From sequence record MG752970.1: a DNA stretch of 64,000 nucleotides; one strand, given 5' to 3'. Shown here one piece after another: positions 2,617 to 22,171 of this stretch. The position numbers and the translations under genes are program-made. Every line of letters begins with the position of its first letter. Position 1 is the stretch's first letter. Under the pieces are notes generated by a model, which worked only from the letters and a program-made list of their open reading frames with translations, ran no database searches and was not told the origin of the DNA.

Positions 2617-3180
2617 ATGACGTCCCAGGAACAATACGCAGAAGTGGTGCAGTGGATAGGGTTGAACGTTCGTAGATATGGTCAAAGGAACGTTCACGAT
2701 TCTTTGGTTGACCGGTATGGAAGATACCATATCGTAAAAGACGGAGTGGATTTCACAGGTACTGGTCTGCCGTTCAGTAAACCAAGTTTCCTAGAGATCA
2801 ACTCTAAGCATTTAACGTTTGAGAACTATGACTTTGAGAATTCACAGTACGGTGGAGTAGGTCAGATCAGTACTGCCTTCATGACTTTAGAATTCTGCAA
2901 AGGTGATCTGGAGAAGGTGGTTAGACAGACCGCTCCGATGAGAATCGATTTCTTGAACATTAGTGCTAAGTTTGGAGAATTTACTAATTTGGTTGCTGCT
3001 ACACAGGTGTCTGATCACGTGATCTTCAGAGTATCAAGACCTAATAGCAGTAGTTCCATATTAGAGATATCGACTATTACGAACGTGGCGATATTTAAAG
3101 GTAAGCAATCCTGCTACTTCACTGACGTATTTGATTTACAGAACATTTTAATAGATAACGGGTTTGAGGATTTGGTATGA
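2617..3180 (+). CDS. paralog family member P1 (no MKLxEI N-terminus)
   Basis: C-term DVFDLQNILIDNGFEDLV; core GLPFSKP..YDFENSQYG shared with P2-P5. Confidence 0.9.
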   Translation: MTSQEQYAEVVQWIGLNVRRYGQRNVHDSLVDRYGRYHIVKDGVDFTGTGLPFSKPSFLEINSKHLTFENYDFENSQYGGVGQISTAFMTLEFCKGDLEKVVRQTAPMRIDFLNISAKFGEFTNLVAATQVSDHVIFRVSRPNSSSSILEISTITNVAIFKGKQSCYFTDVFDLQNILIDNGFEDLV

Positions 3181-3758
3181 GGTTGAATGAAATTAAAGAT
3201 CAGACAGGATTTAAGACTATATCAGATTGGGTTAAACTGAATGCTAGTGAATCTACTGTACACGATGTTCTGGCTAATATTAAAGAATTGCGTTCCGGTT
3301 CATACTGCATCCAGATGAATCACTTGTTCCTAAATGGTAACGGTCAACCGTTCAGTAAACCAGACAATCTCATTATCAGAGCTCTTGAACATATAACATT
3401 TAGCAATTATGATTTCGAGAATTCTGATTATGGGTTTACTGGAACAATTAACGCATATTCGGTATCTCTCGAGTACGGTCCTAAGTGTGATTTGGTAAAG
3501 GTGTTCCAGCGGACTTCAAGTTTATCGTTTGACAAGATTTATGTCACTCTTAAGATGGGTGAGTTTACGAATTTAGTTCCAGCAACCGAGATGGTAGAGA
3601 ATGCGGTAATTACTGCAGCAGGTGGAGAACCTCTTCGTAAACTCTTCATAAGTACAAGAGGACAATTCGTTAATACTGGTGGTAAGAAACATGATTATAA
3701 AGATGCGTTCGATCTACAAGAGATTTTAATTAATAACGGGTTTGAGGATTTGGTATGA
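3177..3758 (+). CDS. paralog family member P2
   Basis: MRLNEI...DAFDLQEILINNGFEDLV; ATGA overlap. Confidence 0.9.
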   Translation: MRLNEIKDQTGFKTISDWVKLNASESTVHDVLANIKELRSGSYCIQMNHLFLNGNGQPFSKPDNLIIRALEHITFSNYDFENSDYGFTGTINAYSVSLEYGPKCDLVKVFQRTSSLSFDKIYVTLKMGEFTNLVPATEMVENAVITAAGGEPLRKLFISTRGQFVNTGGKKHDYKDAFDLQEILINNGFEDLV

Positions 3759-4348
3759 GGCTATCAGAAATAAAAGATAAGGACGCTGATCAGGCAATAG
3801 TTGATTGGGTCAGATCAAACCTCGATTACTATAATGCAAGTGCCATAGTTGATTCGATACCTAGAACGGGTGAGACGTTTAACCTGGCACTAGTTGATGT
3901 AATGCTTGATGGTAAAGGTCGACCTTTCAGCAAACCCGACAATCTTAAGATTACCGCTGATAGTATTACTCTTCTAGACTTTGATTTTGAGAATTCTGAT
4001 TATGGTAATGTTGGAGATATCAGTATCGATTACTTAATTCTAACATATGGAGTTCTGAAGCAAGGTCCTAAGTTTGATCTAGTAAAGGCGATTGAGAAGA
4101 CTCACAATGTGTCGCTGGATACCATTACGATAAATGTTAAACCTGGTGAGTTTAGTAATCTCATAGCCGCAACTGAGATATCAGATAGACTTAATATTAA
4201 TATCCGGCGCATTAAACCTGCCGGTCAGACGGTGAGTATTGATACAAGTAATTGGGTACTCTCTATAGGAAGTAAGAAATTTGATTACAAGGATCCTTTC
4301 GAACTGCAGGAGCTTTTGATTGACAACGGGTTTGAGGAATACGTATGA
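3755..4348 (+). CDS. paralog family member P3
   Basis: MRLSEI...DPFELQELLIDNGFEEYV; ATGA overlap. Confidence 0.9.
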   Translation: MRLSEIKDKDADQAIVDWVRSNLDYYNASAIVDSIPRTGETFNLALVDVMLDGKGRPFSKPDNLKITADSITLLDFDFENSDYGNVGDISIDYLILTYGVLKQGPKFDLVKAIEKTHNVSLDTITINVKPGEFSNLIAATEISDRLNINIRRIKPAGQTVSIDTSNWVLSIGSKKFDYKDPFELQELLIDNGFEEYV

Positions 4349-4929
4349 AGCTATCAGAAATTAAAGAAACTAATAATCCGATGTTTGCATGGATTACTAA
4401 GAACGTCAAAAGTCTGAAAATGCAGAACTTGATGCTGGACTATATTCAAGATATCAAACCCGAGGATCAACTTAAACAAGTAAGCATTCAGAATCTGACA
4501 CTAACCGGTAATGGTGAACCGTTCGAACCACCCCCATTTGACTTACACGTTGCGAATGAACTCATACTTAATAACTATGATTTCGAGAATTCTGATTATG
4601 GTAAACCGGGTACTATACAGGGCGCTCACATCATTTTAGAATATGGTCCTAAGTGCGATTTGGTAAAGGTGGTGCAGAAGATCGTGAACATGCAGTGCGT
4701 TACATTGGGAGTCATAGTTGAATCCGATGGATTTACGAATTTGATTCCTGCAACAGATATATCCTGGAGATTAAATCTATCAATCGTCGATTGGGCAACA
4801 CAGAAAAAGATAATTGAAATTCGTACTGAATCTAAAAAGATATTCATCAACGGTGAGCAGTTAGAATATTCGGATGTCTTTGATCTTCAGGACATTTTGA
4901 TTCAGAATGGATTTAAGGAGTATGTATGA
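4345..4929 (+). CDS. paralog family member P4
   Basis: MKLSEI...DVFDLQDILIQNGFKEYV. Confidence 0.9.
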   Translation: MKLSEIKETNNPMFAWITKNVKSLKMQNLMLDYIQDIKPEDQLKQVSIQNLTLTGNGEPFEPPPFDLHVANELILNNYDFENSDYGKPGTIQGAHIILEYGPKCDLVKVVQKIVNMQCVTLGVIVESDGFTNLIPATDISWRLNLSIVDWATQKKIIEIRTESKKIFINGEQLEYSDVFDLQDILIQNGFKEYV

Positions 4930-5483
4930 GGCTGAGTGAAATTCAAAGAGACGGTATTAAAGAATGGCTGAATAAGTATTTAGCCGACAATCGTATTGAT
5001 GATGTAACATCCATCGTGAAATCTATTGATGCAAATAATGGATTGTATATCAATCAATTGCTATTAGGAAGTAAAGGCAGTACTTTCGTTTCTCCTCCTT
5101 TTCAGATTCATGCAGACTATACTAAACTGTCTGATTACGATTTCGAGAATTCTACATATGCAAATATATCAACAAAAGATCTTGCTCTGGTAGGACGAAT
5201 GAATGATATAGAGAAGGTGGTAACCGGTGTAAAGAAATCTTTTAAAAGATTGGCTGACCTTCAGATTACTGCATTTTCTAATAATGCACGTAATGTAGTT
5301 TCTGCTATATCAATGGTTGACAAATTTGATATGTATGTGCAGATCATGGCTAATGATTATACTCTTTCCATTAACACATTTGATCAATCAATATATACTG
5401 ACGTAACGAATAGACAAACGTACGAAGATGTATTTGATCTACAGGACATTTTAATTAACATGGGATTTGAGGCACTGGTATGA
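4926..5483 (+). CDS. paralog family member P5
   Basis: MRLSEI...DVFDLQDILINMGFEALV. Confidence 0.9.
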   Translation: MRLSEIQRDGIKEWLNKYLADNRIDDVTSIVKSIDANNGLYINQLLLGSKGSTFVSPPFQIHADYTKLSDYDFENSTYANISTKDLALVGRMNDIEKVVTGVKKSFKRLADLQITAFSNNARNVVSAISMVDKFDMYVQIMANDYTLSINTFDQSIYTDVTNRQTYEDVFDLQDILINMGFEALV

Positions 5484-6064
5484 AGCTAACTGAAGTTTTA
5501 AGATTAACGAAGAGAGATGTTATTGATACCATGCAGGAGTATGGTATTAGTTTGGTAGGTAACAGGGCGGTTAGTGAAAGTGTTTTTGAGATCGATGCGT
5601 ATGATCAGGTCATCATGAATCCATCAGAGGCTGCGCTAGAGTTTAGGAAGAGCATTGCTAAACCTATTCCACTCGTATTTGCATATGCATCAAACATGAT
5701 ATTTAGAACCATTAAAGTAGCAGATTGGAGTTATCTAGGATCTCCTAATCAATCTTTAGACTGGTTCTTCGCAAATTGCTTGCTACCAGACTTCAATGAT
5801 ATGCCTAACTTTCCTAGTGTCGCGCTAGAAATTGTTGATGCACGATACCTCCAGCAACCTATTTCGGGTCTGTTTGATAATTCTCCAGTAGCGTCTTTAA
5901 GCTACATCCCTGACGATCGAAACAAGCACGTTAGTATCAGCAAGGGCGTTCATCAGAATAGTAACGACATTCTTATTATATGGAAGGGTGGAAGTAAGAC
6001 CGTATCGAGCACGTTTGAGCTACAGGACTGGTGCATCGATAATGGGTTTGAATTCTGGGCGTAA
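5480..6064 (+). CDS. paralog family member P6
   Basis: MKLTEV...STFELQDWCIDNGFEFWA. Confidence 0.9.
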   Translation: MKLTEVLRLTKRDVIDTMQEYGISLVGNRAVSESVFEIDAYDQVIMNPSEAALEFRKSIAKPIPLVFAYASNMIFRTIKVADWSYLGSPNQSLDWFFANCLLPDFNDMPNFPSVALEIVDARYLQQPISGLFDNSPVASLSYIPDDRNKHVSISKGVHQNSNDILIIWKGGSKTVSSTFELQDWCIDNGFEFWA

Positions 6065-6067
6065 TGC

Positions 6068-6640
6068 TTATACCAGGTTATCAAACCCATTTGTAATCAG
6101 CCAATCCTGAAGTTCGAATGTATCATCTAGAAAAGTTGTCTTTTGTTGGTATCTAACTTTAATCTTTCCAGGTGTGGATGAGGCTGTCTTATCCTTCCAG
6201 ACGGAAAGGAATGAAGTAGGACCATCCTCTAGCAAAAACTCTGTACTCTCAGAATCATTATCAAACATAGGGATAATGCTGTCCTTGAATCCTACATCTG
6301 GACTCATTGAGATCTGTATGTGTTTAAAAACCGGTATCTGAGCTATAGGCGGAATTTCGCAATTAATAAAGTACCATTCTTTTGCTTGAGTTGGTGATCC
6401 TACATCTGACCAGTTGCTAATGATTCTTCCGTTGATCTCTATAGAAAACAATCCATCAAATTCAAAAGGAAGTTTAATTGGCCCGGCTCCATACACTGAA
6501 GCGCTAACATGCAATGATTTAAAGACCACCTTATTGTTGACCACATCAAACGCGACTGGCATTCCAAACTCGATTGAGTTTTTGTCAATAAAGTCTTCAA
6601 CCTGTTTCTTTGTGAGTCCCTGTATCTCTTTAAGCTTCAT
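6068..6640 (-). CDS. paralog family member P7 (inverted)
   Basis: MKLKEI...DTFELQDWLITNGFDNLV; AGAAAGGAG RBS and TAAATA upstream on minus strand. Confidence 0.9.
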   Translation of the reverse strand: MKLKEIQGLTKKQVEDFIDKNSIEFGMPVAFDVVNNKVVFKSLHVSASVYGAGPIKLPFEFDGLFSIEINGRIISNWSDVGSPTQAKEWYFINCEIPPIAQIPVFKHIQISMSPDVGFKDSIIPMFDNDSESTEFLLEDGPTSFLSVWKDKTASSTPGKIKVRYQQKTTFLDDTFELQDWLITNGFDNLV

Positions 6641-6712: not shown

Positions 6713-7309
6713 ATGAAGCTAAACGAAATATCTCCACTAGATGATGCTATATCCTGGGTTAATAAGCACATAGGTGCAAAAGCTCGGGTCGCCCGATCAA
6801 TGATTCAACAGCTGCGATCACTTTATATGAATTCAGAACCAGATAAAGTGATCGCAACGGACCACTTAAACCTGCAAGCTAAACAATTTCCCGATGGTTG
6901 GGTAAGTCCACCATTTAAGATTTCTGCCGAACAAGTCCATTTATATGGGTTTGACACCAAGGACTCGAGGTTTGACTGGATTCAGAGCTGCGATAGTCTA
7001 GTTATTCATGACTATGAAGAAGGTGAGGTTTCAGATATTCGTGTCGATGAAATAGCTAACATTCAGGGATTGAGTGGTTTCTCTGTTCTGGCTGATATTA
7101 ATCATTGTAAGAGAATCGTAAACATTTTCGATCTTATAGGTTCAGTGACGGTGCAGCTAAGAGTTAGTAAGAATAGAACCGATGATACCGATTTTGCCAT
7201 CTGGATCTACAACAACGATGCTAACATTCAGGGCAAGCGCGTTAACTTCAATTCCATCTTTGATCTACAAGAGATTCTGATTGATAATGGATTCGAGGAT
7301 CTAGTATGA
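6713..7309 (+). CDS. paralog family member P8
   Basis: MKLNEI (ATG 6713, AAAGGA RBS)...SIFDLQEILIDNGFEDLV. Confidence 0.9.
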   Translation: MKLNEISPLDDAISWVNKHIGAKARVARSMIQQLRSLYMNSEPDKVIATDHLNLQAKQFPDGWVSPPFKISAEQVHLYGFDTKDSRFDWIQSCDSLVIHDYEEGEVSDIRVDEIANIQGLSGFSVLADINHCKRIVNIFDLIGSVTVQLRVSKNRTDDTDFAIWIYNNDANIQGKRVNFNSIFDLQEILIDNGFEDLV

Positions 7310-7908
7310 AGCTAAACGAAATTGCAATGAGCGATGGTGAGATGATTGACTATCTCATTAAGAATCTCAAGTTTAAGGACGATTGGTACGACACGGAATG
7401 GAATGATGCGTCAGAGGTTTCAACCACACTAACTGTTAATAAGTATGGTGTCGATGTGGATGCAGCATACTGGCTAGAACCTAAGAGAGTAGTTGATATT
7501 GCATTTCCGATTGTAAACATGATTGGATGGACTGGTAAATGGAACATCATGAAGCAGTGCAAGGTTAATATGCCAGATGTATCGTCAGTGTATGTAACTG
7601 AGTTTAATGGTACTCCGGCTGATATCACCGCTTACTTTTCTCAGTTTCAGAAACTAGATGATGCCCGAGTCGTGATAAAGAAAGGAGTAAAAGGTGCGAT
7701 TAATCTGTTCAATGCTTTAACAGAATTGAATTCAAAAGATCCGATGTTTTACGTTACTCTTGAAAATGAAAAGGTGTCTATCAGTAAGAATAGAAACTCC
7801 GCCATCATAACTATATTTGATCTCGCAGAATATAAGACGTATCATGTAGATAGCATCTTTGATCTGCAAGACTGGCTGATAGATCATAATATGAAGGATC
7901 TAGTATGA
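7306..7908 (+). CDS. paralog family member P9
   Basis: MKLNEI...SIFDLQDWLIDHNMKDLV; core resembles P23. Confidence 0.9.
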   Translation: MKLNEIAMSDGEMIDYLIKNLKFKDDWYDTEWNDASEVSTTLTVNKYGVDVDAAYWLEPKRVVDIAFPIVNMIGWTGKWNIMKQCKVNMPDVSSVYVTEFNGTPADITAYFSQFQKLDDARVVIKKGVKGAINLFNALTELNSKDPMFYVTLENEKVSISKNRNSAIITIFDLAEYKTYHVDSIFDLQDWLIDHNMKDLV

Positions 7909-8483
7909 AGCTAAACGAAATAACAGACATCTACAATTGGGCAAGAACGTATAGTAAAAACGGAAGCACGAATTTGCACCTTGAGAATGGCAAAGTGTTG
8001 TTTATGGCCATGTACTTGAATGCTCCTACCTACGATAATACATTCGTACCTCCACCTATTGAGTGTCAGGTTGAAACTAACTGCAGAATTTTATTCTTTG
8101 ATGTTAGCACCATCACGTTAGACTGGCTTGATAGCTATCAAAATCTTACCATAGATGGCGATGGTGATTTCACCAACTTACTACCAGAAATTCGTAAGAG
8201 CGTTCAAAAGGTAAATCCAAATACGATAGTGATTAACACCCTTTTAACCAGCACCTTAAACATTCCAGAATTATGTAGCTTGCCGTGCAATGTTAGCGTG
8301 GCCATTTTCAGGAAAGTTGTCAATTCATCGTATGAAAATTCAGAATTCATCCTGTATACGAATAAAGGAAGCATTGAAATTATAGAAGATGTTGGTACAA
8401 GCAATGCCCGGGTTATAAAAAACTTAGATCAGTTTACTCTACAGGATTGGCTGATTGATAACGGTTACGAGAACTTCATATGA
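7905..8483 (+). CDS. paralog family member P10
   Basis: MKLNEI...DQFTLQDWLIDNGYENFI. Confidence 0.9.
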   Translation: MKLNEITDIYNWARTYSKNGSTNLHLENGKVLFMAMYLNAPTYDNTFVPPPIECQVETNCRILFFDVSTITLDWLDSYQNLTIDGDGDFTNLLPEIRKSVQKVNPNTIVINTLLTSTLNIPELCSLPCNVSVAIFRKVVNSSYENSEFILYTNKGSIEIIEDVGTSNARVIKNLDQFTLQDWLIDNGYENFI

Positions 8484-9049
8484 AACTTCGAGAGATAAAA
8501 GGATCAGTGGATCCAAGTTGGTTGAAATGGGCTAAAGCTAATACACAAAAAGCTAGATCAAATCTATTAGACATTATTGAGTACGAGGATGGAAGACCAT
8601 TCCTACATGTTGAGAACATGACGTTGAGAGGCAACAATCAGGCGTTCACTCCACCTCCCTTTCAAATCATAGTAGAAGAAACATTAGAGCTTAACAACTA
8701 TGATTTTGAGAATTCAGTGTATGGAAACATTAAAGCTAAGACTGTAGAAATGAATGGTGTAGAAGGCGATATGCTTAAGGCTGTAAAAGCCATTGAGACG
8801 ATTAAGCCTGAATACGTACTTATCTACAGTAAGCGCGGAACATTTAGCAACTTATTAGCCGCCGTCGATGGACAGAATATTGCTCAGTTAGAAATTGTTA
8901 TTACGCATGCAACACCACCATTAACACCAATTGCTTCTATATCAACGTGGGACAAAATGGTTTTGATAGGCAACAGCTACAAGGCATATTCTGACATCTT
9001 TGAGCTGCAACAGTTACTAGTGGATAATGGTCTTGAGGATATTGCATGA
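8480..9049 (+). CDS. paralog family member P11
   Basis: MKLREI...NYDFENSVYG...DIFELQQLLVDNGLEDIA. Confidence 0.9.
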   Translation: MKLREIKGSVDPSWLKWAKANTQKARSNLLDIIEYEDGRPFLHVENMTLRGNNQAFTPPPFQIIVEETLELNNYDFENSVYGNIKAKTVEMNGVEGDMLKAVKAIETIKPEYVLIYSKRGTFSNLLAAVDGQNIAQLEIVITHATPPLTPIASISTWDKMVLIGNSYKAYSDIFELQQLLVDNGLEDIA

Positions 9050-9684
9050 AGCTAAACGAGATTAAAGACAATAGTGAAATCGCAAACTGGATTAATAGGT
9101 TTGCGGGTGAAGAATCTCATACACTTGGCGCCAGCTTCTTAGATCGTGATGAGCTACTGAAGAAGATATCTCTTGACAGTGATGGTAAATATGTGCTACC
9201 GACCACGGTTAAAAACATTAAAGTAAGATGGTCCGGGAAATTTGAGGCGCCCCCGTTCATTCTGAACGGGGTGAATTGGTTGATCTTTTCTTCAAATGAT
9301 TGTGATACGGTAGATCTAGGGTTTGTAAAGAACGCTTGGGTTCTATCATTCATCGGAAATCTAGGAAACTTAAATCATTACGTAGGTGAGCTGGGTAAAC
9401 TTGAGACACCATTAGGATCGTCTCATAGGGTAAACTTCAAAGCAAATAAACCGTGCTCAGGATTAATTGAGACTCTGCACAATCTTCAGCGCACAAGAGT
9501 TCATTTTGACTACATTCCAATTCATCCGGATCTAGACTTAAAGCAACTGGGCGGTAGGGGATTCAAGCTTCTATGCGAACATAACGTATACACCTTCGGT
9601 TTTGCCGGTGAAGCTGTTAAATATGATAACCTATTCGATGTTCAGGATCGATTAGTGAATGACGGATTTGCGGAGTTTATATGA
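9046..9684 (+). CDS. paralog family member P12
   Basis: MKLNEI...NLFDVQDRLVNDGFAEFI. Confidence 0.9.
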   Translation: MKLNEIKDNSEIANWINRFAGEESHTLGASFLDRDELLKKISLDSDGKYVLPTTVKNIKVRWSGKFEAPPFILNGVNWLIFSSNDCDTVDLGFVKNAWVLSFIGNLGNLNHYVGELGKLETPLGSSHRVNFKANKPCSGLIETLHNLQRTRVHFDYIPIHPDLDLKQLGGRGFKLLCEHNVYTFGFAGEAVKYDNLFDVQDRLVNDGFAEFI

Positions 9685-10286
9685 AGCTGAATGAAATTAA
9701 AAAGGATATTATTAGAGAGTGTTATGACTGGTTTGAGTCATACGTTATATTAGGAGGTCTTTCTAGAGTTTACGAAAACTTTAAGGAAGATTTCTATGAC
9801 AATTTCTTCATGGCACCGGATGGAGTCCCAGTACTAAGGTTTGATACTAAGCAGATCAACATTGAATATTCTGGAAAGGAGTGGACTCAGCCACCGTTTA
9901 GAATCAGAGCAGCCTCCATACGTATTGCTAATTTAGATTGTCGTAATATGGATTTAAGCTTCATCGATCCTATCATAGATGACATGCAATTTAGAATGCA
10001 TAATTGTGTTGTTGGTAATTGTCAAAAGTTTATTGATGCAGAAGCCAGCGTAGAACAATTTGATATCTCAACATCGGATATCAGCAACGTTGTAGAGATG
10101 CTGCGAGTTTGCGAGAATGTTAGAATCTATTTGAATCTTGGCAAATCGAAAGTACTTGTTATTGAGAGCGTTGAAAGAAGCAAATTTTCTCTTGTAGATA
10201 GTATCGATAAGAAGCAGTATGATTTCACTGATATTTTTGACGTTCAAACATGGCTCATAGAAAATGGGTATGAGGACATCGTATGA
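9681..10286 (+). CDS. paralog family member P13
   Basis: MKLNEI...DIFDVQTWLIENGYEDIV. Confidence 0.9.
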   Translation: MKLNEIKKDIIRECYDWFESYVILGGLSRVYENFKEDFYDNFFMAPDGVPVLRFDTKQINIEYSGKEWTQPPFRIRAASIRIANLDCRNMDLSFIDPIIDDMQFRMHNCVVGNCQKFIDAEASVEQFDISTSDISNVVEMLRVCENVRIYLNLGKSKVLVIESVERSKFSLVDSIDKKQYDFTDIFDVQTWLIENGYEDIV

Positions 10287-10900
10287 AGTTAAATGAGGTG
10301 GTCGACACACGAACAAAGGTATACCAGTGGTTGGTAAAGTATGATAATTCGCACCACAAGCCAAGCAAAGAGGATCTCAAGATAGAAAGTTGGATCCTCT
10401 CAACAAATGAACTTTGGCTGCGTCCAGTAAAGAATTCAATAGACAAACGGTTCTACGCGCCGCCAGACGTTCTGTTTGACGTCAACCAAATTCACATAGT
10501 CGGTTTTGATGTATCAACCATTAAGTTGAATTGGATCCTACATACCAGAAGTTTAATTTTGGCTGGCGTTGGTGATTGGACAAAATCAATGCCGGGGATT
10601 ATCGAAAGTGTTGGAGGATCCGGTAACAAAATATTGCAGATTCAAACTAGCACTGACAGCAAAATGAATCTGCTTGATTTGTTCAATATTAATCCGACAG
10701 CATATGCGTCCGTCTCATTCTATCATAATGGATATGGTCAAGTTGGTAGCAAGCTAGCATTTTACGTAAATAGCAATAAGCATGGTGGATTTGTGGTGAC
10801 CTTTATGGATGATAATCAGGACGGGTTTGATGAAGAAGTGAACGACCAATTCGAACTACAAGACGTGCTGATACAAAATGGATACGAGAGGTTCACGTGA
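10283..10900 (+). CDS. paralog family member P14
   Basis: MKLNEV...DQFELQDVLIQNGYERFT. Confidence 0.9.
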   Translation: MKLNEVVDTRTKVYQWLVKYDNSHHKPSKEDLKIESWILSTNELWLRPVKNSIDKRFYAPPDVLFDVNQIHIVGFDVSTIKLNWILHTRSLILAGVGDWTKSMPGIIESVGGSGNKILQIQTSTDSKMNLLDLFNINPTAYASVSFYHNGYGQVGSKLAFYVNSNKHGGFVVTFMDDNQDGFDEEVNDQFELQDVLIQNGYERFT

Positions 10901-11505
10901 AACTTAAAGAAGTAGCAATTAATTTTGATGAAATGTCCAAGTGGGAAGAATGGGTTAAGCATAACCTACAAAACGTGACGGGCCAGGGAAACATTTGGAC
11001 AACCATCAAGAATTTCATTTCACATAATACTCTTGATTTGCGTTCCGCTCCTGACATTGCTAGAGCTCTAGTTGGAACCGGTCAGCCATTTATTTCTCCA
11101 CCCGGACAATTTATTAAAGGATCGATGGAGTTCATCAATTATGATTTCGCCAACACCGCATCAATAGATAATCTAGTGAGCAGCAGAATTTTTCTGTATT
11201 CACAAAATGGGTATGGTGATCTTCCGACCTTATTACGAAAATTTAAATCCGTTGAAGCTTTGCGTAAGCTTACAGCAAATATAGAATACGGCAAAATCGT
11301 GAATTTGACAGAGGCTGCTGAGGAATTTGCTGATGGAAAAATCGAAATTGTAATTGATGTAGTGCATCGATCCGGTGCTGTCATTTTTGGTATCAATCTA
11401 CAAAAGAAATTTGTAAATACAACCAATGGAAATAACTTTCAATATGCTGATTCATTTGAGCTACAAGATTGGTTGATTAGCAACGACTTTAAGGATCTTG
11501 TATGA
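10897..11505 (+). CDS. paralog family member P15
   Basis: GTG start, (M)KLKEV...DSFELQDWLISNDFKDLV; GTGA overlap. Confidence 0.9.
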   Translation: MKLKEVAINFDEMSKWEEWVKHNLQNVTGQGNIWTTIKNFISHNTLDLRSAPDIARALVGTGQPFISPPGQFIKGSMEFINYDFANTASIDNLVSSRIFLYSQNGYGDLPTLLRKFKSVEALRKLTANIEYGKIVNLTEAAEEFADGKIEIVIDVVHRSGAVIFGINLQKKFVNTTNGNNFQYADSFELQDWLISNDFKDLV

Positions 11506-12083
11506 AGCTACACGAAATACGTGGTGAAGATGAACGTGCGATTGAATGCTGGCATTGGTTGAAGGATAGGCTGATAAGTCCTGTTTTATCTTACGAAGAG
11601 TTTTTGGATCGATTCTATGTAAGTCATGATACCTATGTTTTTGATTACATCTACAAACCAATTCAGATGCGGTTCGATGGTGAATGGGAGGGATCTCCAC
11701 TCAAAATGAAAGTGGGTTCCATAAACTTTAAAGATTCGGATTGCCATAAACTTGAAATTGAATCTTTAATAGATGTAGAAACAAACTTATATCTGACTCG
11801 TTGTCCTATTGGAAATCTGAATGGATTGGCGTCAAGCATTGAGAAAATAAACTTTCTAAGTATTGCCGGAACAGAGGACGTCTCCGGAATATGTGCGTAC
11901 ATTGGAGCTCTAGACTATCATAATGAATTTGTTCTTCGAATGGAGGCTATAGATATAAATGCCGATCATCGAAAAATAGAAGTATTTGACAAGAGCTCAA
12001 CGTGGAGAGATGAATTTAACTTTGACAATGTTTTTGATCTCCAAGCTTGGATGATTGAGAAAGGATTTGATTATTTAGTATGA
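11502..12083 (+). CDS. paralog family member P16
   Basis: MKLHEI...NVFDLQAWMIEKGFDYLV. Confidence 0.9.
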   Translation: MKLHEIRGEDERAIECWHWLKDRLISPVLSYEEFLDRFYVSHDTYVFDYIYKPIQMRFDGEWEGSPLKMKVGSINFKDSDCHKLEIESLIDVETNLYLTRCPIGNLNGLASSIEKINFLSIAGTEDVSGICAYIGALDYHNEFVLRMEAIDINADHRKIEVFDKSSTWRDEFNFDNVFDLQAWMIEKGFDYLV

Positions 12084-12673
12084 AGCTGAATGAGATAAGC
12101 GGTAGAGATCAGCTCTCCTATGAATGGATGAAGTGGATCGAAAACAATTTCACGGTATCGGAAGGGCAGAAAATGCTAAATCGCATTTCCGTGACTGGTG
12201 ACTTAATGATTCCGGCAGCTTCAGAATTATACGGAAGAGGAAAACCATTTGCTCCTCCCGGCAAAGTGATCGATGGAAGATGGGTAGGATTAAATGATTA
12301 CGATTTTGTTAATTCAGATTTTTCAAAGCTGCAAGTACTAGATCAGTTAGAGCTTTTCGTGACAGACGAAGCGGACGGAATCTTGGGTGATCTCGCGCGA
12401 GTTTGTGAGAAGGTTCAATCTAATCCAGAAATAGTTAAAAGACTGCATGTAATAGCCGCACGTGATAGAATTACTAACGTATGCGAGGCAGCCGAAATTT
12501 TCCCACACTTTATTTTAAGAATTAGAGATTTCAATTCGAATAAAGATATCCTAGATCTAGATGCAGCAAGAAAGCATGTAACTGATATCAATGATGGAAC
12601 CACGCATTTTTATTCTAGCGTGTTTGAGCTACAAGAATTTTTGATTAATAACGGATTTGAGGACATAGCATGA
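12080..12673 (+). CDS. paralog family member P17
   Basis: MKLNEI...SVFELQEFLINNGFEDIA. Confidence 0.9.
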   Translation: MKLNEISGRDQLSYEWMKWIENNFTVSEGQKMLNRISVTGDLMIPAASELYGRGKPFAPPGKVIDGRWVGLNDYDFVNSDFSKLQVLDQLELFVTDEADGILGDLARVCEKVQSNPEIVKRLHVIAARDRITNVCEAAEIFPHFILRIRDFNSNKDILDLDAARKHVTDINDGTTHFYSSVFELQEFLINNGFEDIA

Positions 12674-13305
12674 AGCTAGTTGAAATAGGAAATGAAAAAT
12701 CCGACTTAGTAAACTCTCAAATAGATTGGTTGAATTCTTATAGGATTAAACCAACTATGCAATCCGTGACTAACATGAAAAACGCGGAAAAGAGAGGTGA
12801 GCCATTTGTGATTAATTCTGCATCTTTAAAACTTAATGGCCAAGATACTCCCAATTTTATTCAACCTCCTAATATACTTCTCAATGCTAGCTCTCATATA
12901 GAATTTTGGAATTTTAATTTTGAGACTATAACAAATTTTAATTTCATATATCATGCTCCGGAATTATATTTCCACGGCAAGCACGGAAGATGGGGGAATT
13001 TCTTTGATAACTTATCATCAAAAATATCCTCGATACCCGGGTTATATTACGCTTTATTCGATATAGACGTTATCAAAGAAATTCCTAAAAACCTTATCAA
13101 TGTCTTCGAGATTCCATGCACTACGAGAATTTTTGCGTTCAATGGAGGTCCAGAACCAATTGATATTTGGCATGAGCATGGTGTACAACATAATCTAGTT
13201 ACCTGGTGGAGTAATGATGGCACCCAGCATTATGAAAAACATTACTCTGATATTTTTGAACTACAAGAAATTTTAATTGACGCAGGGATTCCAAATTTAA
13301 TATGA
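12670..13305 (+). CDS. paralog family member P18
   Basis: MKLVEI...DIFELQEILIDAGIPNLI. Confidence 0.9.
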   Translation: MKLVEIGNEKSDLVNSQIDWLNSYRIKPTMQSVTNMKNAEKRGEPFVINSASLKLNGQDTPNFIQPPNILLNASSHIEFWNFNFETITNFNFIYHAPELYFHGKHGRWGNFFDNLSSKISSIPGLYYALFDIDVIKEIPKNLINVFEIPCTTRIFAFNGGPEPIDIWHEHGVQHNLVTWWSNDGTQHYEKHYSDIFELQEILIDAGIPNLI

Positions 13306-13895
13306 AGCTAGCCGAAATAGCGCATGATGAAATGCAAGATGCAGTAGAGTGGGCCAAAACCTATGCCAGTGACCTGTTGATGAGCAGATCAGACTTCTTA
13401 CAGAATGTCGATGGTCGTATAGTGTTTGAAGATGAATACTATACAATGGACATTTCTCCAAGTGATAATTGGGTCAATCCGCCATTTGATATCAAAATTA
13501 GATCTCTGTCAATTAACATGGATCATAAATTTGATATTCAGAAAATGAATTTCGATTTCATTAAACAGTGCGACAATATTCAACTGCAAAATAAAAAGGG
13601 AATTGACAATATAGGAGATCTAAAAGCATTCATCGATAAATTCAATCATGTGCATTTATTCAGTTGCAATGCTTATACACCAAGTACGATGATCACAAAT
13701 GTTGTAGCGGCTATGGACGCATCAATGGGTGTTGACGTAATGTTCACCGACCTCCAAAATATTTCCATACATAAACCAGGCAGGTTGGACGTCTTCACCA
13801 TCAGAAGCACCGGCGCGCACATCATGGAAACATTTACCGATTTATTCGATCTACAAGATTACCTTGTTAATCACGGTCTGGAAAGCGTCGTGTAA
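13302..13895 (+). CDS. paralog family member P19
   Basis: MKLAEI...DLFDLQDYLVNHGLESVV. Confidence 0.9.
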   Translation: MKLAEIAHDEMQDAVEWAKTYASDLLMSRSDFLQNVDGRIVFEDEYYTMDISPSDNWVNPPFDIKIRSLSINMDHKFDIQKMNFDFIKQCDNIQLQNKKGIDNIGDLKAFIDKFNHVHLFSCNAYTPSTMITNVVAAMDASMGVDVMFTDLQNISIHKPGRLDVFTIRSTGAHIMETFTDLFDLQDYLVNHGLESVV

Positions 13896-13897
13896 GA

Positions 13898-14485
13898 TCA
13901 CGTGAGCCTTTCGTATCCATTAGTGACCAACCAATCTTGTAGATCGAATGCGTCATTCACCAACAAAGGCTCATCATCACCAAATTCAATTTTGATTTTG
14001 GAACCAATTCGTTTTGAAATTATTAGAGTAGGTCCGTTTCCAGTTGAAAGAGAAAACCCAAATCTACCCATATTCGCAAACATGCTAGTAATGTTGTCGC
14101 TATAATCACTATCAAAACTGATCCAAAGCCGCTTATAGTTTAGTGGAGTGTCCTTTAGAGGTGGCAAATTACAATTACGGAAGAACACCACATTGTTAGG
14201 AAGGTCAACGTCGCACCAACTTCTAATTGTACGCCTTCTAATACATAGGTCGGTGAACCCTTCTATTTTACATTTAAGAGCAAAATCCTCATACTCATCC
14301 GACGGTCTGACGTAAACATAACCCTTATTATCAAATTCAACTTTAGGCCCATTGGGTGTTTGTATTATGCAATAGTTGGGTTTTATTCTATACGATTTTC
14401 CGGTTTCATAATCATATGCCGTACGATAAAATTCTTGCTCGACCCATTGAGGAAGAGATTCGAGAAATTCGTAATCCATAATCAT
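13898..14485 (-). CDS. paralog family member P20 (inverted, no MKLxEI)
   Basis: C-term DAFDLQDWLVTNGYERLT. Confidence 0.88.
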   Translation of the reverse strand: MIMDYEFLESLPQWVEQEFYRTAYDYETGKSYRIKPNYCIIQTPNGPKVEFDNKGYVYVRPSDEYEDFALKCKIEGFTDLCIRRRTIRSWCDVDLPNNVVFFRNCNLPPLKDTPLNYKRLWISFDSDYSDNITSMFANMGRFGFSLSTGNGPTLIISKRIGSKIKIEFGDDEPLLVNDAFDLQDWLVTNGYERLT

Positions 14486-15069
14486 ACTAATGCCTCAAAC
14501 CCGTTTTCTATTAACCAGTCCTGTAGTTCGAACACATCTTTCAGGGTGGCACCTCTGACGTCCCCGGATGCCCAAATATCTCCATCGCGATCTTTTGTGA
14601 TTGTTGTAGATCTGTTAGAATTAATAATTCTAATAGTAATATGCAAATCTTTTCTGTCAAATATCGGAACAATATTTTCTCTGTGATCCGGATTTATTTT
14701 AATCCACCACTTACATGATGATGATGGCAAATCCTTTAATGGTGGGGTTTTGCATTTGTCAATGTATGCGGTTTTGTATGGAATGGGGACATCATTCCAT
14801 CGCTCTATAGTTCTATTAGAAACCTGTAACTCGGAAATGCCCCGGGTTATAAAAGGAACATGCAAACGCGGATATTCATCTGGGTTGTCATTTATCAGAC
14901 GAATGTAATTATCAGAAAATTGTATGACAAGTGGTTGGGCCGGTTCATCAATGATTCCATAGTGTGGCGTGTAATAATCCAAGCTGAGAGTCATTGGATT
15001 CATTTTTCTGGTTTCAAACGTATTCTTAACCCAGTTGTCAATCTCTAATCTTTTTGCTGAACTTATCAT
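14482..15069 (-). CDS. paralog family member P21 (inverted, no MKLxEI)
   Basis: C-term DVFELQDWLIENGFEALV; ATGA overlap. Confidence 0.88.
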   Translation of the reverse strand: MISSAKRLEIDNWVKNTFETRKMNPMTLSLDYYTPHYGIIDEPAQPLVIQFSDNYIRLINDNPDEYPRLHVPFITRGISELQVSNRTIERWNDVPIPYKTAYIDKCKTPPLKDLPSSSCKWWIKINPDHRENIVPIFDRKDLHITIRIINSNRSTTITKDRDGDIWASGDVRGATLKDVFELQDWLIENGFEALV

Positions 15070-15695
15070 GCTAACCTACTGAAATCGTTATCCATCAACC
15101 ATGACTGTAACTCAAACACATCGTTAAGTCTGATTTCTGTTGTCAAATATCCGGTTTGAACTCTTATGGGTTCGTTATACCATCTATAAACCAACAGAAA
15201 ATCTGAAGTTGTATGGTTGGTGAGCGTAAACGATGCCTGCCGTCCATCAGATTTGCATGTGTTTTCAAACATGTTGATGATGCTGCCATTAAATCCCAAA
15301 CTTGTCTCTACCCGAATGTCAGGAAATTCTGGCATATTATCCAAGTTTGGGATGATGCAATCTATTAAGCTTATTCTTTCTATTCCAGTGGGGAGATGAT
15401 CCCACTCTGTAATAGTTCTTTTGTTTACCTGAAATTTTGATACGCCACTTGATATAAATGGAAATTTTAATTCTTCAAATTCATCTCGTTTATCTGATTT
15501 TTCGATCACACGCAGACACTTTCTATCAATTCCAAACCATACATGCGTGTCACATATCATGTGATTTGGAATTTCTAGACCTAAAATTCGATTTGTCTTC
15601 TGCTCAATTCTAGCAACTCGAAGATTGTTTTCAATGAATCCACTCCACAATCCTCTTCGGTATTGATCAACATCTAATATCATGCTAAATTCCAA
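15066..15695 (-). CDS. paralog family member P22 (inverted, no MKLxEI)
   Basis: C-term DVFELQSWLMDNDFSRLA; start either TTG 15695 or ATG 15683. Confidence 0.85.
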   Translation of the reverse strand: MEFSMILDVDQYRRGLWSGFIENNLRVARIEQKTNRILGLEIPNHMICDTHVWFGIDRKCLRVIEKSDKRDEFEELKFPFISSGVSKFQVNKRTITEWDHLPTGIERISLIDCIIPNLDNMPEFPDIRVETSLGFNGSIINMFENTCKSDGRQASFTLTNHTTSDFLLVYRWYNEPIRVQTGYLTTEIRLNDVFELQSWLMDNDFSRLA

Positions 15696-15863: not shown

Positions 15864-16133
15864 ATGCTTAAGGAAATGAGCGATCATTCGTTCAGAAAAG
15901 CTGTAGATAGGGATTTGAAAAACATGGGATTTAAGCCTGGGTGCGAATACATGGTAGCTTTAGTCATGGGCTGCCCTGGACAGAGGGTCATTCTTCCATG
16001 GAATAATTGTGATTGTCCTGAACATGCAAAGACAATGTGCAGGATGTTGGAACTAACAACAGACAATCCACAGTGGTTCTTTGTGGTTCTTAGAAATGAC
16101 GGTCGCATCATTTATCGGACCGAACAGAAGTAA
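15864..16133 (+). CDS. small Cys-containing hypothetical protein
   Basis: 89-aa ORF, GGAGG RBS, CDCPEH motif. Confidence 0.7.
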   Translation: MLKEMSDHSFRKAVDRDLKNMGFKPGCEYMVALVMGCPGQRVILPWNNCDCPEHAKTMCRMLELTTDNPQWFFVVLRNDGRIIYRTEQK

Positions 16134-16193
16134 AAGTTTCCATTAGGATTGGGTTTGATTTAGAATTTATCAAGTCAAACCCAAGTGAATATC

Positions 16194-16427
16194 ATGAACA
16201 CGCGAGAACTTTTCAAGAAGTTGGTTGCTGAAGCTAAAGGTACACGCGAGGAAGCAACTACCGTTCTAGGAACGCATGGGAGTCATCGCAGGGAATGGTT
16301 CGAGAAAAATAAGAATCGTGAAGGTAAGTATGCGTATCTGACAGATCAGGAAATTGACATGATGTCAGAAAGAGAGCTTCATGACACAATGATCAAGTTC
16401 ATCGCGGACTGCTTCCAGCAACGATAA
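16194..16427 (+). CDS. small hypothetical protein
   Basis: ORF 16185..16427, likely ATG 16194 (MNTRELFK). Confidence 0.65.
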   Translation: MNTRELFKKLVAEAKGTREEATTVLGTHGSHRREWFEKNKNREGKYAYLTDQEIDMMSERELHDTMIKFIADCFQQR

Positions 16428-16447: not shown

Positions 16448-16475
16448 AAAAGGATGCCACACGGCATCCTTTTTG
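16448..16475. terminator. intrinsic terminator (likely bidirectional)
   Basis: AAAAGGATGCC-ACAC-GGCATCCTTTTT. Confidence 0.75.
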
Positions 16476-16535: not shown

Positions 16536-17132
16536 ATGAAGCTTTTTGAGATAAACGAGCAGAGTCCTCTTGACTGGACCATGGACAATTTAAAACTGAT
16601 GGGTGATTTCGGGGATAAGAAAGGTTATGGTCGAAAAGAAGTAGATACGAATGCGACATTTTATTCTGCTGGCAAATTCAAAGGTGGAGCTGATTTATCA
16701 GATTTTTGGGTAGAACCCAAGAAGGTTATCACATCCCCGCCATACTACATAACTAAGTGCGTAGGGTGGGTTGGAAAATGGAAAATCGTCAAAAATTCAG
16801 ACATGAAAATTTTAAATCCTACAGAAGTTTATGTGTGGGATTTTGATGGAACGGTTGATGAAATAAAATTGTACCTATCCAAGTTCAAGGCCGAAAATGT
16901 ATACTTGCAATTTAAAGCTGGTTTCACAAAAGAATTGTTTAATGTCTTGATGGCCGCCAAGGGCGCCGCCACAAATGGCTATGAAATTGAATCTGGTCCT
17001 TTATCAATCTACTATTACCCACACAATGACAAAATCAGTGTCATGATAGATGGTGTAGTTAAAGCTACTGTAGATGATGAATTTGAACTTCAAGATTGGT
17101 TGGTTAATAATGGATATGACAATTTGCTATGA
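16536..17132 (+). CDS. paralog family member P23
   Basis: MKLFEI...DEFELQDWLVNNGYDNLL. Confidence 0.9.
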   Translation: MKLFEINEQSPLDWTMDNLKLMGDFGDKKGYGRKEVDTNATFYSAGKFKGGADLSDFWVEPKKVITSPPYYITKCVGWVGKWKIVKNSDMKILNPTEVYVWDFDGTVDEIKLYLSKFKAENVYLQFKAGFTKELFNVLMAAKGAATNGYEIESGPLSIYYYPHNDKISVMIDGVVKATVDDEFELQDWLVNNGYDNLL

Positions 17133-17743
17133 AGCTACACGAAATTAATTTTGATGAGCAGGCCGTTCAACTTAAGAAAAATGTTTTAGAATGGCTCATC
17201 AAGTACGACAGAAGACATACATGGTTACCAGATGACCATATTTCTATTCGAAATGGTATAGCACAAATAGAAGAACTTGAATTATATCCAACCGTCAATA
17301 ATGGTGAATTTGTTCCTCCACCTGTAAACTTCTGGTGTGATAGAATAGACATCAATAATTTTGATATGAGCACCGTGAGTTTGGATTGGATTAAATCGTT
17401 ACTACACATCAGATTTTACGATCATTATAGTGGGAAGTTGCACGAAAAGATAGATGATATTCTCGCGCTCAATCGCAAATTTGGTCCTCAAGTAACTATC
17501 ACAGTATCTGACGGTGATAGATTTGAGCTTTTTAAAATTTTCGAAATACAAGAATGTGAATTCAGAATCGATGGCGAACAAAAGGTTTTCGATCTATCGT
17601 ATACATGCTATAGAGGAACAAAGCGTGTTATTGAAATCTATCTACCAAAAGAAAACGATTGGGCTGAATATTTCTGCACGAATATGGATGCCTTCGATTT
17701 ACAAAATCTTTTGATAGAACATGGATTTGAAAATCTTGCTTGA
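17129..17743 (+). CDS. paralog family member P24
   Basis: MKLHEI...DAFDLQNLLIEHGFENLA. Confidence 0.9.
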   Translation: MKLHEINFDEQAVQLKKNVLEWLIKYDRRHTWLPDDHISIRNGIAQIEELELYPTVNNGEFVPPPVNFWCDRIDINNFDMSTVSLDWIKSLLHIRFYDHYSGKLHEKIDDILALNRKFGPQVTITVSDGDRFELFKIFEIQECEFRIDGEQKVFDLSYTCYRGTKRVIEIYLPKENDWAEYFCTNMDAFDLQNLLIEHGFENLA

Positions 17744-17761
17744 GTGTGCTTTAGAAAGATT

Positions 17762-18415
17762 ATGAAATTAAGTGAAATACAAGTTAAGATAACGCCGGAC
17801 ATATCAAATTGGGTGCAAAATAATATGCCACTCAATGATGAGTCATATGAGGCCATTCATAGCATTGGTGAAAATTTGGCATCCAGTGGTAGAGCAATTG
17901 CAACCTTTGCCAATGCTGGTACCATCTATTTGACACCCCAAAATAGCCAATCAGTAGAGTGGACCAATCCTCCATTTAAAATGCGGTTTGATTCTCCATG
18001 TAGGGGTGTAGATATTGATGGCTACAATTTAAATGGAATATCATTTGATTGGTTTGAAGGTGGACATTGTTTAAGCTTGCATTGCCGCAGCGATCCAATT
18101 GGCGATGCTCTCACAAAACTTCATACAATTAAAAATGTGGACAGCTTTTATGCGTCATTTAACATCCACACGCTGAAAGGTGGATTGCTGGAAGCCGCAG
18201 ATTCTGGGATTCCTGAAATTGAGCTGTGGGCTGGAAATGAAAATGCAACAGCGCTGTTTACGATAAAGGTTATTCAAGGGAATTTCATGCTTAAGAATGT
18301 TCGAAAACGCGATGAACATGGGAAATTGGTGGGTGCACCTCTTCAGTTTCGTTGCAATGATGTTTTCAGCATGCAAGAAGCTCTCATAGAATGTGGATAC
18401 GGAGATTTTATATGA
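17762..18415 (+). CDS. paralog family member P25
   Basis: MKLSEI (start refined to 17762)...DVFSMQEALIECGYGDFI. Confidence 0.88.
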   Translation: MKLSEIQVKITPDISNWVQNNMPLNDESYEAIHSIGENLASSGRAIATFANAGTIYLTPQNSQSVEWTNPPFKMRFDSPCRGVDIDGYNLNGISFDWFEGGHCLSLHCRSDPIGDALTKLHTIKNVDSFYASFNIHTLKGGLLEAADSGIPEIELWAGNENATALFTIKVIQGNFMLKNVRKRDEHGKLVGAPLQFRCNDVFSMQEALIECGYGDFI

Positions 18416-19056
18416 AGCTTGCAGAAATTTTAGATGATTTTCCCGACTGGGCGAAGACGCCCGAATATAGATCCGCTGTTAAATGGCTGGATACATATGC
18501 TGAGGGAGTGAATGAAGATGCTGGAGAAGTCATAACTCTGGAAGATGGGGTATTTAAAACCGATGTTCTTAGGATAGATAATACCGGATATTCTAATAGA
18601 CTAGAATATCCACCATTCAAAGTGAATGCACAGAAAATAGTAATAGAGTCTTTTGATCTATCTGACATTGAAAATTTTGATTGGATACAGCGTTGCGATG
18701 ACCTTGTAATGGATGGCGACGAAACTCTAACATTGGGTAAACTTGTTCCATCTATAATCCAGTTATGCAAGAGAATGCCAGAGTTGTCTTTAATTTTGTC
18801 TTTTAATGCCAATGACAAAATACAAGGTGGAATTTCACAAATTATTGATCTACCCAATCCACTTTCAATTTATGTCGTTCACCCATCTATGGGATTTTCT
18901 ATTGACTTCGAATATTTTAAAACCAAGTATGACAAGTCTGGAACATTGCAAATTCTTAAACCTACTAATTCAGATGTGGTTGCTGAATACAAAATATCCA
19001 GTGTATTTGAATTTCAGGATGCAATGATTAATCACGGTCTGGAAAAATATCTATGA
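18412..19056 (+). CDS. paralog family member P26
   Basis: MKLAEI (start refined to 18412, ATGA overlap)...SVFEFQDAMINHGLEKYL. Confidence 0.9.
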   Translation: MKLAEILDDFPDWAKTPEYRSAVKWLDTYAEGVNEDAGEVITLEDGVFKTDVLRIDNTGYSNRLEYPPFKVNAQKIVIESFDLSDIENFDWIQRCDDLVMDGDETLTLGKLVPSIIQLCKRMPELSLILSFNANDKIQGGISQIIDLPNPLSIYVVHPSMGFSIDFEYFKTKYDKSGTLQILKPTNSDVVAEYKISSVFEFQDAMINHGLEKYL

Positions 19057-19106
19057 AGCTAGAAGCAATTTACCAGGCATTCCCATTCTCGGAGTTCCCA
19101 ATATGA
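19053..19106 (+). pseudogene. 17-codon mini-ORF / collapsed paralog cassette
   Basis: MKLEAIYQAFPFSEFPI*, ATGA overlap with P26 stop and with P27 start. Confidence 0.5.
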
Positions 19107-19720
19107 AAATGAATGAAATTTTAGATGGCTACGAAGATTCAGATACCATGTTTGATTATTTGGTGAAGTTTGATGCCGAATGGATTACACACGATAAACA
19201 TGTCAAGTTTAAATCCTTGCACAAAAAGCCTCCAGGTAAAATGATACCATCAATAGAAAATGGAGTTGCTGATTTTGAAAATGGGAAACTCAACATACTC
19301 GCAAGAAATGCTGGTGCATTTAGGCTTCCATTTAGAGCGAAAAATGTCAAAGAGTTTGAATGTCGCGCGGGCATAGAAAGTTGGGCGGATGCGCTAGGTG
19401 CGACTAATAGAATTAAACTTTCTGAATCAAATATCATTCCTCCAGATCTTGGAGCTATTCCCGATGTGAGTGTCATTCAGGTAAACGTCCCAACTCATAC
19501 CACATGCAATGGATCAATTTCGCACTGGTTTGATGGACATTTAAAAAGTGCGTCGTTTGGAATTGAATCCAAAATTGCAATTTTGCGACTTGAGGACTGG
19601 GATCAAATTAGAATTGATTATGTGGATCCTGAAATTGGATCCTGGAGAGTAGCGATAGCAAATGATGCGTTTGAGCTACAAGATTGGTTAATAGAACACG
19701 GTTACGAGAGTATAGCATGA
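19103..19720 (+). CDS. paralog family member P27
   Basis: MKMNEI...DAFELQDWLIEHGYESIA. Confidence 0.9.
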   Translation: MKMNEILDGYEDSDTMFDYLVKFDAEWITHDKHVKFKSLHKKPPGKMIPSIENGVADFENGKLNILARNAGAFRLPFRAKNVKEFECRAGIESWADALGATNRIKLSESNIIPPDLGAIPDVSVIQVNVPTHTTCNGSISHWFDGHLKSASFGIESKIAILRLEDWDQIRIDYVDPEIGSWRVAIANDAFELQDWLIEHGYESIA

Positions 19721-21609: not shown

Positions 21610-21634
21610 AAAGGGAGCAAAAAGCTCCCTTTTT
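21610..21634. terminator. bidirectional intrinsic terminator
   Basis: AAAGGGAGC-AAAAA-GCTCCCTTTTT between convergent genes. Confidence 0.75.
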
Positions 21635-21817: not shown

Positions 21818-21842
21818 GTCAACCTCCAATTTCGATATTGTT

Positions 21843-21871
21843 ATTCTAACATGAAATCGGGAAAAGTACAA
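21843..21871 (-). promoter_or_regulatory. sigma70-type promoter
   Basis: minus strand TTGTAC-17 nt-TAGAAT. Confidence 0.7.
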
Positions 21872-22144: not shown

Positions 22145-22171
22145 TTCGCGTCTCCAGATGGTCTTAGGTTT

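Follow-up and report, generated by a model that had tools for sequence, protein, structure and literature searches.

Among the described systems, the one coming closest to the locus dealt with here, a tandem array of paralogous genes within a 64,000-nucleotide (nt) stretch of the jumbo phage RsoM2USA genome, is the PeSL-mediated modular shuffling of T4-type phages (Arbiol et al. 2010, PMC2839356; Comeau et al. 2014, PMC4122927). The two systems share a repeated motif of ~65-100 nt that is found at the gene boundaries of a variable region and provides the gene downstream with its expression signals, and in each of them related phages differ by whole-gene insertions, deletions or replacements bounded by this motif. 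PeSLs, however, are intergenic, combine a sigma-70-type early promoter with a terminator stem-loop, and flank unrelated orphan genes, whereas the motif of the RsoM2USA array is coding sequence for two proteins combined with a ribosome-binding site and a stop/start overlap, and the units it separates are paralogs; a further difference is that mini-circles have been demonstrated for PeSLs. Promoter-like sites numbered 68 vs. 71.7 expected and no terminator-like sites were found at the overlap junctions, and membership among the PeSLs was rejected as the junctions have neither intergenic DNA nor a promoter or terminator signal. By analogy, the array may be regarded as a coding-sequence counterpart of PeSL-mediated shuffling, its closest known system, while being a member of neither the PeSLs nor the integrons.

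Three further systems invite comparison. The ATGA-coupled operons of phages and bacteria share with the array the 4-nt overlap, the Shine-Dalgarno sequence inside the upstream coding region and the chains of same-strand genes; the array differs in having 24 such overlaps within one paralog family, and in that the codons of a conserved C-terminal peptide double as the ribosome-binding site, with a codon choice that switches where no gene follows. The T-even internal-protein loci with their conserved capsid-targeting sequence (Repoila et al. 1994, as far as cited in PMC3012670) likewise have a short conserved N-terminal peptide on small, fast-diverging proteins and are polymorphic between related phages, but the array family also has a conserved C-terminal helix, a common fold and a far higher copy number (~35), and no homology to the T-even internal proteins was detected. 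Finally, “genomic accordions”, or birth-and-death families (T4: PMC9391042), are tandem paralogs whose copy number differs between relatives and which are produced by short-repeat recombination; the array, in contrast, lacks recent near-identical duplicates, its nearest paralogs being 42% identical.

We put at roughly 60% the probability that the locus is a translationally coupled array with a codon-selected ribosome-binding site, undergoing whole-gene turnover in which short junction matches guide recombination. Each protein has conserved ends, a short N-terminal peptide and a C-terminal helix, around a beta-rich core that evolves fast; the genes form long polycistronic blocks with each Shine-Dalgarno sequence written into the last codons of the preceding gene, and this site is maintained by selection on synonymous codons (GAG or AAG at the tail, a last codon ending in A, and TGA as the stop). 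Whole genes are gained, lost, relocated and replaced as the array evolves, the boundaries lying at start codons or at the terminal tags; short junction matches (usually 5-10 nt, occasionally 17-28 nt) would guide unequal or ectopic recombination, and selection would keep only those products that preserve frame and coupling. The recurring 75-nt junction is thus mainly a by-product of the conserved peptides and the translation signals. Large paralog arrays in jumbo phages are mostly unannotated, and this one offers a tractable case of a rapidly diversifying phage gene family that is kept expressed while its genes come and go; if junctions do guide recombination, regulatory-motif-mediated shuffling would extend to motifs lying wholly within coding sequence.

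Layout of the array and its gene family

The window, i.e., the whole stretch of DNA that was analyzed, corresponds to bases 186001-250000 of the record of Ralstonia phage RsoM2USA (MG752970.1), and positions are counted from its first letter; over the initial 6.4 kilobases of the array, identity to that record is 100%. Window positions 2617-24056 hold 33 paralogous genes encoding proteins of 185-218 amino acids, all 33 of which match one profile over their full length, and two further genes bearing the same terminal tags lie beyond (26829-27419 and 27932-28702), so that this region of the jumbo phage is a tandem array of at least 35 paralogs of ~200 amino acids. Every gene of the window is annotated as hypothetical in GenBank, and the RsoM2USA genome paper is silent on the family (a text search for “paralog” or “duplicat” returned 0 occurrences). 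Pairwise amino acid identity within the family ranges from 12 to 42%. What is conserved are the ends: an N-terminal peptide of six residues, with Leu-x-Glu at residues 3-5 in 27 of the 33 members (as counted on the alignment), and a C-terminal tag comprising the last 16 residues, two of them invariant. At the DNA level, a 65-nt repeat family (at least 60% identity) is found at 23 gene ends. The arrangement is as follows:

2617-6064, plus strand: block of paralogs 1-6, joined by five ATGA overlaps
3122-3197, plus strand: junction of paralogs 1 and 2 singled out by an earlier note on this DNA, consisting of C-terminal tag, ATGA (3177-3180) and N-terminal tag
6068-6640, minus strand: paralog 7, convergent with paralog 6, with its own AAAGGAG-type ribosome-binding site
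6713-13895, plus strand: paralogs 8-19, a block of 12 genes with 11 overlaps, one of them the GTGA at 10897
13898-15683, minus strand: paralogs 20-22, with two ATGA overlaps
16536-19056, plus strand: paralogs 23-26, with an 18-nt spacer between 24 and 25
19053-19106, plus strand: tag-only open reading frame of 17 codons, in ATGA overlap with both paralog 26 and paralog 27
19103-20900, plus strand: paralogs 27-29, with two ATGA overlaps
20990-21595, plus strand: paralog 30, free-standing, followed by a terminator-like hairpin (21610-21632)
22247-24056, plus strand: paralogs 31-33, with two internal overlaps and a third leading into the 390-amino-acid non-family gene
24053-25225, plus strand: 390-amino-acid non-family gene, coupled to the last paralog by an overlap (the 25th)
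26829-27419, plus strand: divergent family member outside the main array, with both terminal tags (profile E = 8e-11)
27932-28702, plus strand: 256-amino-acid protein matching the profile mainly at the N- and C-terminal tags (whole-protein E = 1.4e-6)

Strong terminator-like hairpins are seen at the ends of blocks and none within them, which supports long polycistronic blocks. Besides the one following paralog 30, such hairpins lie at 2442-2466, just upstream of paralog 1, at 16448-16473, and at 25228-25265, where the sequence is a perfect 19+19-nt palindrome; those at 16448-16473 and 21610-21632 are called on both strands. Where blocks converge, as for paralogs 6/7 (6013-6112) and 19/20 (13844-13949), the opposite-strand C-terminal tags make up imperfect inverted repeats of ~40 nt (71-72% complementary), and these tail-to-tail tags could form hairpins at transcript ends.

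The GenBank starts of several paralogs (those at 10897, 18412, 6713 and 22247) differ from the starts giving the conserved N-terminus and the 4-nt overlap; paralog 15, for instance, is annotated from 10933 and not from the GTG at 10897, and paralog 26 from 18391 and not from 18412. For the 256-amino-acid protein at 27932-28702, the sole match to the family core is a stretch of 34 positions, and it may be a case of the tags being carried on a different, or much-diverged, core.

Tail codons as the ribosome-binding site of the next gene

The earlier note had counted 24 paralog-to-paralog junctions as 4-nt overlaps, and our own gene listing, for which the 45 nt upstream of every start were listed, gives the same 24: 23 ATGA and one GTGA (10897). 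Such overlaps join 24 of the 27 same-strand family neighbor pairs vs. 5 of the 30 non-family pairs in the window (Fisher p = 3e-8). The note had also proposed that the codons of the conserved tail create the ribosome-binding site of the next gene, and this proposal held up well. At 15 of the 24 junctions, the start is preceded at a distance of 4-16 nt by a GGAG, GAGG or AGGA core, whereas synonymous resampling of the same amino acids yields 4.8 +/- 1.7, with 0 of 2000 trials reaching 15; the remaining nine junctions have no such core.

The codon used for the tail glutamate is GAG in 13 of 13 genes with an overlapping gene downstream and GAA in six of the seven without one (Fisher p = 1.8e-4), against a GAG share of 35% in the family background and a GAA:GAG ratio of 23:6 for the N-terminal glutamate. 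The tail lysine, where present, is AAG in 3/3 cases. The 4-nt overlap itself imposes an A-ending last sense codon and a TGA stop, whereas genes having no follower show varied last codons and, in a relative introduced below as relative A, mostly a TAA stop. That relative repeats the tail-glutamate pattern in part, with GAG:GAA at 14:3 where an overlap lies downstream and 3:3 where it does not, and block-initial genes have an ordinary AAAGGAG-type site. It is, therefore, strongly supported that the choice of synonymous codon depends on the presence of a follower gene, and the reading that tail codons double as the ribosome-binding site of the next gene appears well supported on the same sequence comparisons. 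With one and the same conserved residue encoded by GAG when a gene follows and by GAA when none does, the array provides an unusually clean natural control for synonymous-codon selection.

A second, weaker nucleotide-level preference adjoins the start codon: the lysine of codon 2 is encoded by AAG in 18 genes and by AAA in 8, vs. a 41% AAG background (p = 0.004), and CTA is the commonest codon for the leucine at position 3.

Whole-gene turnover and the junction as a possible substrate for recombination

Relatives were sought by several routes. Megablast and tblastn against an annotated phage collection returned RsoM2USA itself only, a degenerate DNA pattern for the C-terminal tag gave nothing in viral contigs, and conserved neighbor proteins used as anchors retrieved no relative from viral contigs or JGI metagenome contigs. 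A profile search of 1.84 billion representative proteins gave 88 hits, of which, after removal of the phage's own proteins, a few long repeat proteins and fragments, ~50 metagenomic members of ~200 amino acids with the same tags remained. Three relatives could be used for comparisons of gene order: relative A (contigs L004, 15.6 kilobases (kb), and L012, 13.7 kb), with ~60% amino acid identity in the family genes; relative A2 (L027 and L028), ~87% identical to A at the nucleotide level; and relative B (L003 and L021-L026), with 82-88% nucleotide identity to RsoM2USA. Word-indexed searches found no orthologues of paralogs 2 and 9.

The family evolves fast, as protein identity between RsoM2USA and A is 58.7% for the family cores vs. 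89.5% for neighboring non-family genes; the non-family genes in or next to the array (15864-16427, 24053-25225) are 81-94% identical to their counterparts in A at the protein level, the surrounding paralogs 44-75%. Gene order is collinear with the relatives, but gene content differs, with at least 10 whole-gene gains, losses, moves or replacements vs. relative A. Relative A is without paralogs 9, 25 and 30 and has six additional family genes; its orthologue of paralog 18, moreover, is placed between those of 26 and 27. In relative B, additional genes follow paralog 5 and precede paralog 21, and in A as well as in B the orthologues of 22 and 21 are separated by an added family gene. Features bearing on these comparisons are:

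3155-3182 and 3733-3760, plus strand: 28-nt exact direct repeat flanking paralog 2, present in the window in these two copies only
7296-7322 and 7895-7921, plus strand: 27-nt exact direct repeat flanking paralog 9
7306-7908, plus strand: paralog 9, missing in relative A, with the 27-nt exact repeats on both sides
17762-18415, plus strand: paralog 25 slot, found in three states among the relatives
61266-62333, plus strand: Mre11-like gene (Pfam Metallophos)
62317-64000, plus strand: Rad50-like gene (Pfam SMC_N/AAA_23), cut by the window end

The earlier note had proposed mapping the breakpoints of insertions and deletions between related phages, and this mapping places the boundaries at junctions, with none detected inside cores. 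For each insertion or deletion, occupied and empty sites align as far as the junction, and in 34 of the 34 genes of the relatives both halves of the core match the same RsoM2USA gene, so that chimeric genes were not detected. Best resolved is the slot that follows paralog 24 and precedes paralog 26: paralog 25 occupies it in RsoM2USA and B, A2 has an unrelated family member there, and in A it is empty; the flanks of A and A2 are 87-89% identical there, and similarity is lost and regained at two start codons. In B, the core of paralog 30 has a four-fold-site identity of 0.41, vs. ~0.72 in five other genes, with flanks that are 86-88% identical and identity resuming at the start of the C-terminal tag, which we read as replacement by a much older allele rather than as fast point mutation. 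With the best paralog pair at 42%, no recent duplication has been caught in the act, and the array is old and diversified rather than freshly amplified.

These differences bear on what the note had claimed for the DNA of the junction, namely that the ~75-nt stretch is a recurring homology island at which recombination could add, delete or swap whole cores. Over 75 nt, the 24 junctions have a mean pairwise identity of 57.3% and a median longest exact match of 8 nt, and codon resampling with the peptides kept already gives 55.6%. The chance of paralogs sharing an amino acid also sharing its codon is 0.46-0.48 in the tags (0.41-0.44 expected) and 0.41 in the cores (0.40 expected). Since this same-codon excess is small, a strong DNA-level homology island was rejected; junction conservation is mostly an amino acid effect of conserved terminal peptides and codon bias, with a small but real excess at the nucleotide level.

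Such numbers are what one would expect if translation and protein constraint were all there is, with illegitimate or microhomology events occurring anywhere, selection leaving the clean whole-gene products, and the junction being no recombination substrate whatsoever. In keeping with this, the C-terminal tag is a confidently modeled helix within the fold (see below), the best-resolved ends of insertions and deletions share little more than a start codon, and tag-only remnants (also discussed below) show that deletions do occur inside genes. We consider this explanation rather doubtful all the same, as a number of observations speak against it. The 28-bp block that the note had reported as identical on the two sides of paralog 2 is indeed exact, and it and the 27-nt run, which are the longest two, surpass the null, the probability of even one being 0.011; a single gene lies between the copies of each. 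Exact junction repeats of 17-28 nt are, in total, a few. Junction repeats at lineage-specific or moved genes are 27, 19, 18, 11, 10 and 7 nt long vs. a median of 8 nt at shared genes (one-sided p = 0.0075, both genomes pooled, 6 vs. 24 genes). Between orthologues of RsoM2USA and its closest metagenomic relative, identical residues use the same codon in 84.9% of cases in tags vs. 74.1% in cores, with p = 0.0014 reached only after partial genes are added (p = 0.19 for full-length genes only). To these may be added the absence of chimeras (0/34) and the position at a junction of every boundary mapped, of which there are about a dozen. Of the proposed homology island there thus remain a modest synonymous excess, seen between orthologues and small among paralogs, and a few long repeats.

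At the other extreme, the 75-nt junction might be a dedicated cassette boundary at which the general recombination of the phage routinely adds, deletes and swaps cores, making the array a designed diversity generator. The slot with three states bounded at start codons, the replaced allele of paralog 30, bounded on its right by the C-terminal tag, and the number of whole-gene differences from relative A would all fit, as would the gp46/gp47 pair that the note had placed in the window and that Pfam bears out as an Mre11/Rad50-type nuclease pair. We nevertheless regard it as unlikely, given that the junctions are only weakly homologous, and this mostly because of what they encode, that every core belongs to a single homologous family, none being unrelated cargo, that even the nearest paralogs are old (at most 42% identity), that the replacement at paralog 30 has its left boundary in a spacer and not in a tag, and that core-only deletions are seen. 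An integron-type site-specific cassette system, with which the array shares only the superficial likeness of single-gene units in a row, seems extremely improbable: there is no local inverted repeat or hairpin site at any junction, 24 junctions have no intergenic DNA at all, all units are paralogs of one family, and the selected window proteins that were scanned gave no integrase match in Pfam. Integron membership was rejected for want of an attC-type imperfect inverted repeat at any boundary.

The coupled array with short junction matches guiding recombination, which we prefer, has several points weighing against it as well. A typical junction pair, with its ~8-nt exact match and 57% identity almost wholly explained by the amino-acid-preserving null, is a poor substrate for ordinary homologous recombination. 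At the 24/26 slot, the two boundaries have hardly more in common than the start codon and a few bases; where paralog 30 was replaced, the boundary on the left falls in the intergenic spacer, outside the tag; and the closest paralogs are only 42% identical. The relatives, present in the public samples ERZ23579032, ERZ23872309, ERZ23327992, ERZ23578823 and SRR33780682, are known from short metagenomic contigs belonging to several samples, so the relative lineages are composites, and the test on repeat length rests on a small sample. The whole-gene boundaries themselves may reflect survivorship, in that the arrays one gets to see are the intact, coupled ones. Two family genes, furthermore, survive as tags without a core. 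One is the remnant at 19053-19106 between paralogs 26 and 27, where A has a full-length family gene; it is in frame and in ATGA overlap with both neighbors, which suggests selection to keep the translational relay. The second, in the paralog-30 slot of relative A, also carries a frame change. Each is read, from its sequence, as a family member reduced by one internal deletion, and such loss of the core alone, with both junctions kept, is not predicted by junction-by-junction exchange. Hence, of the claim that whole cores are added, deleted and swapped by recombination at the junctions, the whole-gene unit and the junction boundaries stand as observed, while recombination at junctions as the cause of the gene changes, together with the “recombinase-free” character the note had attributed to the array, is what we infer.

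Going one step further, and only tentatively, the array might be a self-renewing repertoire in which junction recombination lets co-circulating jumbo phages exchange, lose and gain family genes; this would amount to PeSL shuffling in protein-coding form and be a source of host-interaction proteins that change fast and are possibly delivered by the virion. As the junction comprises the protein termini, the ribosome-binding site and the stop/start overlap, every exchange would, in such a repertoire, yield an in-frame, coupled gene.

A small non-family gene on the minus strand (21872-22144) is present in RsoM2USA and absent from relative A (L012), and the edges of this difference (~21840-21872 and 22166-22202) are formed by an imperfect direct repeat of ~30 nt ending in a 13-nt exact match. 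Insertions and deletions bounded by short repeats are, therefore, not confined to the paralog junctions.

Predicted fold and possible role of the family

An AlphaFold model built on a 90-sequence family alignment (predicted local distance difference test (pLDDT) 92.6, predicted template modeling score (pTM) 0.86) predicts N-terminal helices, a beta-rich core and a C-terminal helix lying within the fold. The helix formed by the C-terminal tag has a pLDDT of 97-98, and residues 1-10 one of 59, indicating a flexible N-terminus. Neither Pfam nor PHROGs gave a family match for the paralogs, and Foldseek found no significant match in the PDB (TLR4 being reached at a template modeling (TM) score of 0.31-0.37), while the BFVD matches are ~35 unnamed proteins sharing one accession prefix, which may be the phage's own paralogs. 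Leucine-rich-repeat (LRR) signals are weak, amounting to sub-threshold matches to internalins and ANP32A (E = 0.04-0.5) with no Pfam LRR hit; the weak profile hits include long repeat proteins, at least one of them plant-LRR-like as judged by eye. The core may, on these signals, be leucine-rich-repeat-like. With ~50 metagenomic members, no named relative and a confident predicted fold without a solved match, the family is a candidate for a new class of phage host-interaction proteins.

Conservation of the N-terminal tag could also be functional at the level of the protein, a reading that can be combined with any of the DNA-level models: the tag would be a sorting or processing signal (e.g., a capsid-targeting and prohead-protease cleavage peptide, as in the T4 internal proteins), and the family would consist of host-interaction proteins that are packaged and injected. 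The Leu-x-Glu near the start of most members would be in line with this, as would the flexible N-terminus of the model, the T4-type prohead core scaffold/protease gene listed in the published RsoM2USA genome, and the faster evolution of the family cores (59% amino acid identity) than of their neighbors (89.5%), as expected of arms-race proteins; the T-even internal proteins are likewise diverse and, as described in PMC3012670, share only a conserved targeting sequence. Yet neither sequence nor fold searches (Pfam, PHROG, PDB, named viral structures) matched the paralogs to a T4 internal protein or a named family, no family member has been reported in virion bands (the published mass spectrometry covered the most abundant bands only), and a motif of a few residues is too short to be specific, all of which makes us think of the sorting signal as fairly improbable. 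Given the Leu-x-Glu near the N-terminus, the rapid evolution and a T4-type prohead protease gene in this phage, packaged and processed host-interaction proteins are a testable lead, and nothing more.

As for the surroundings of the array, the 390-amino-acid gene coupled to its last paralog (24053-25225) gave a weak Pfam hit, below threshold, to KwaB-like (E = 0.0013).

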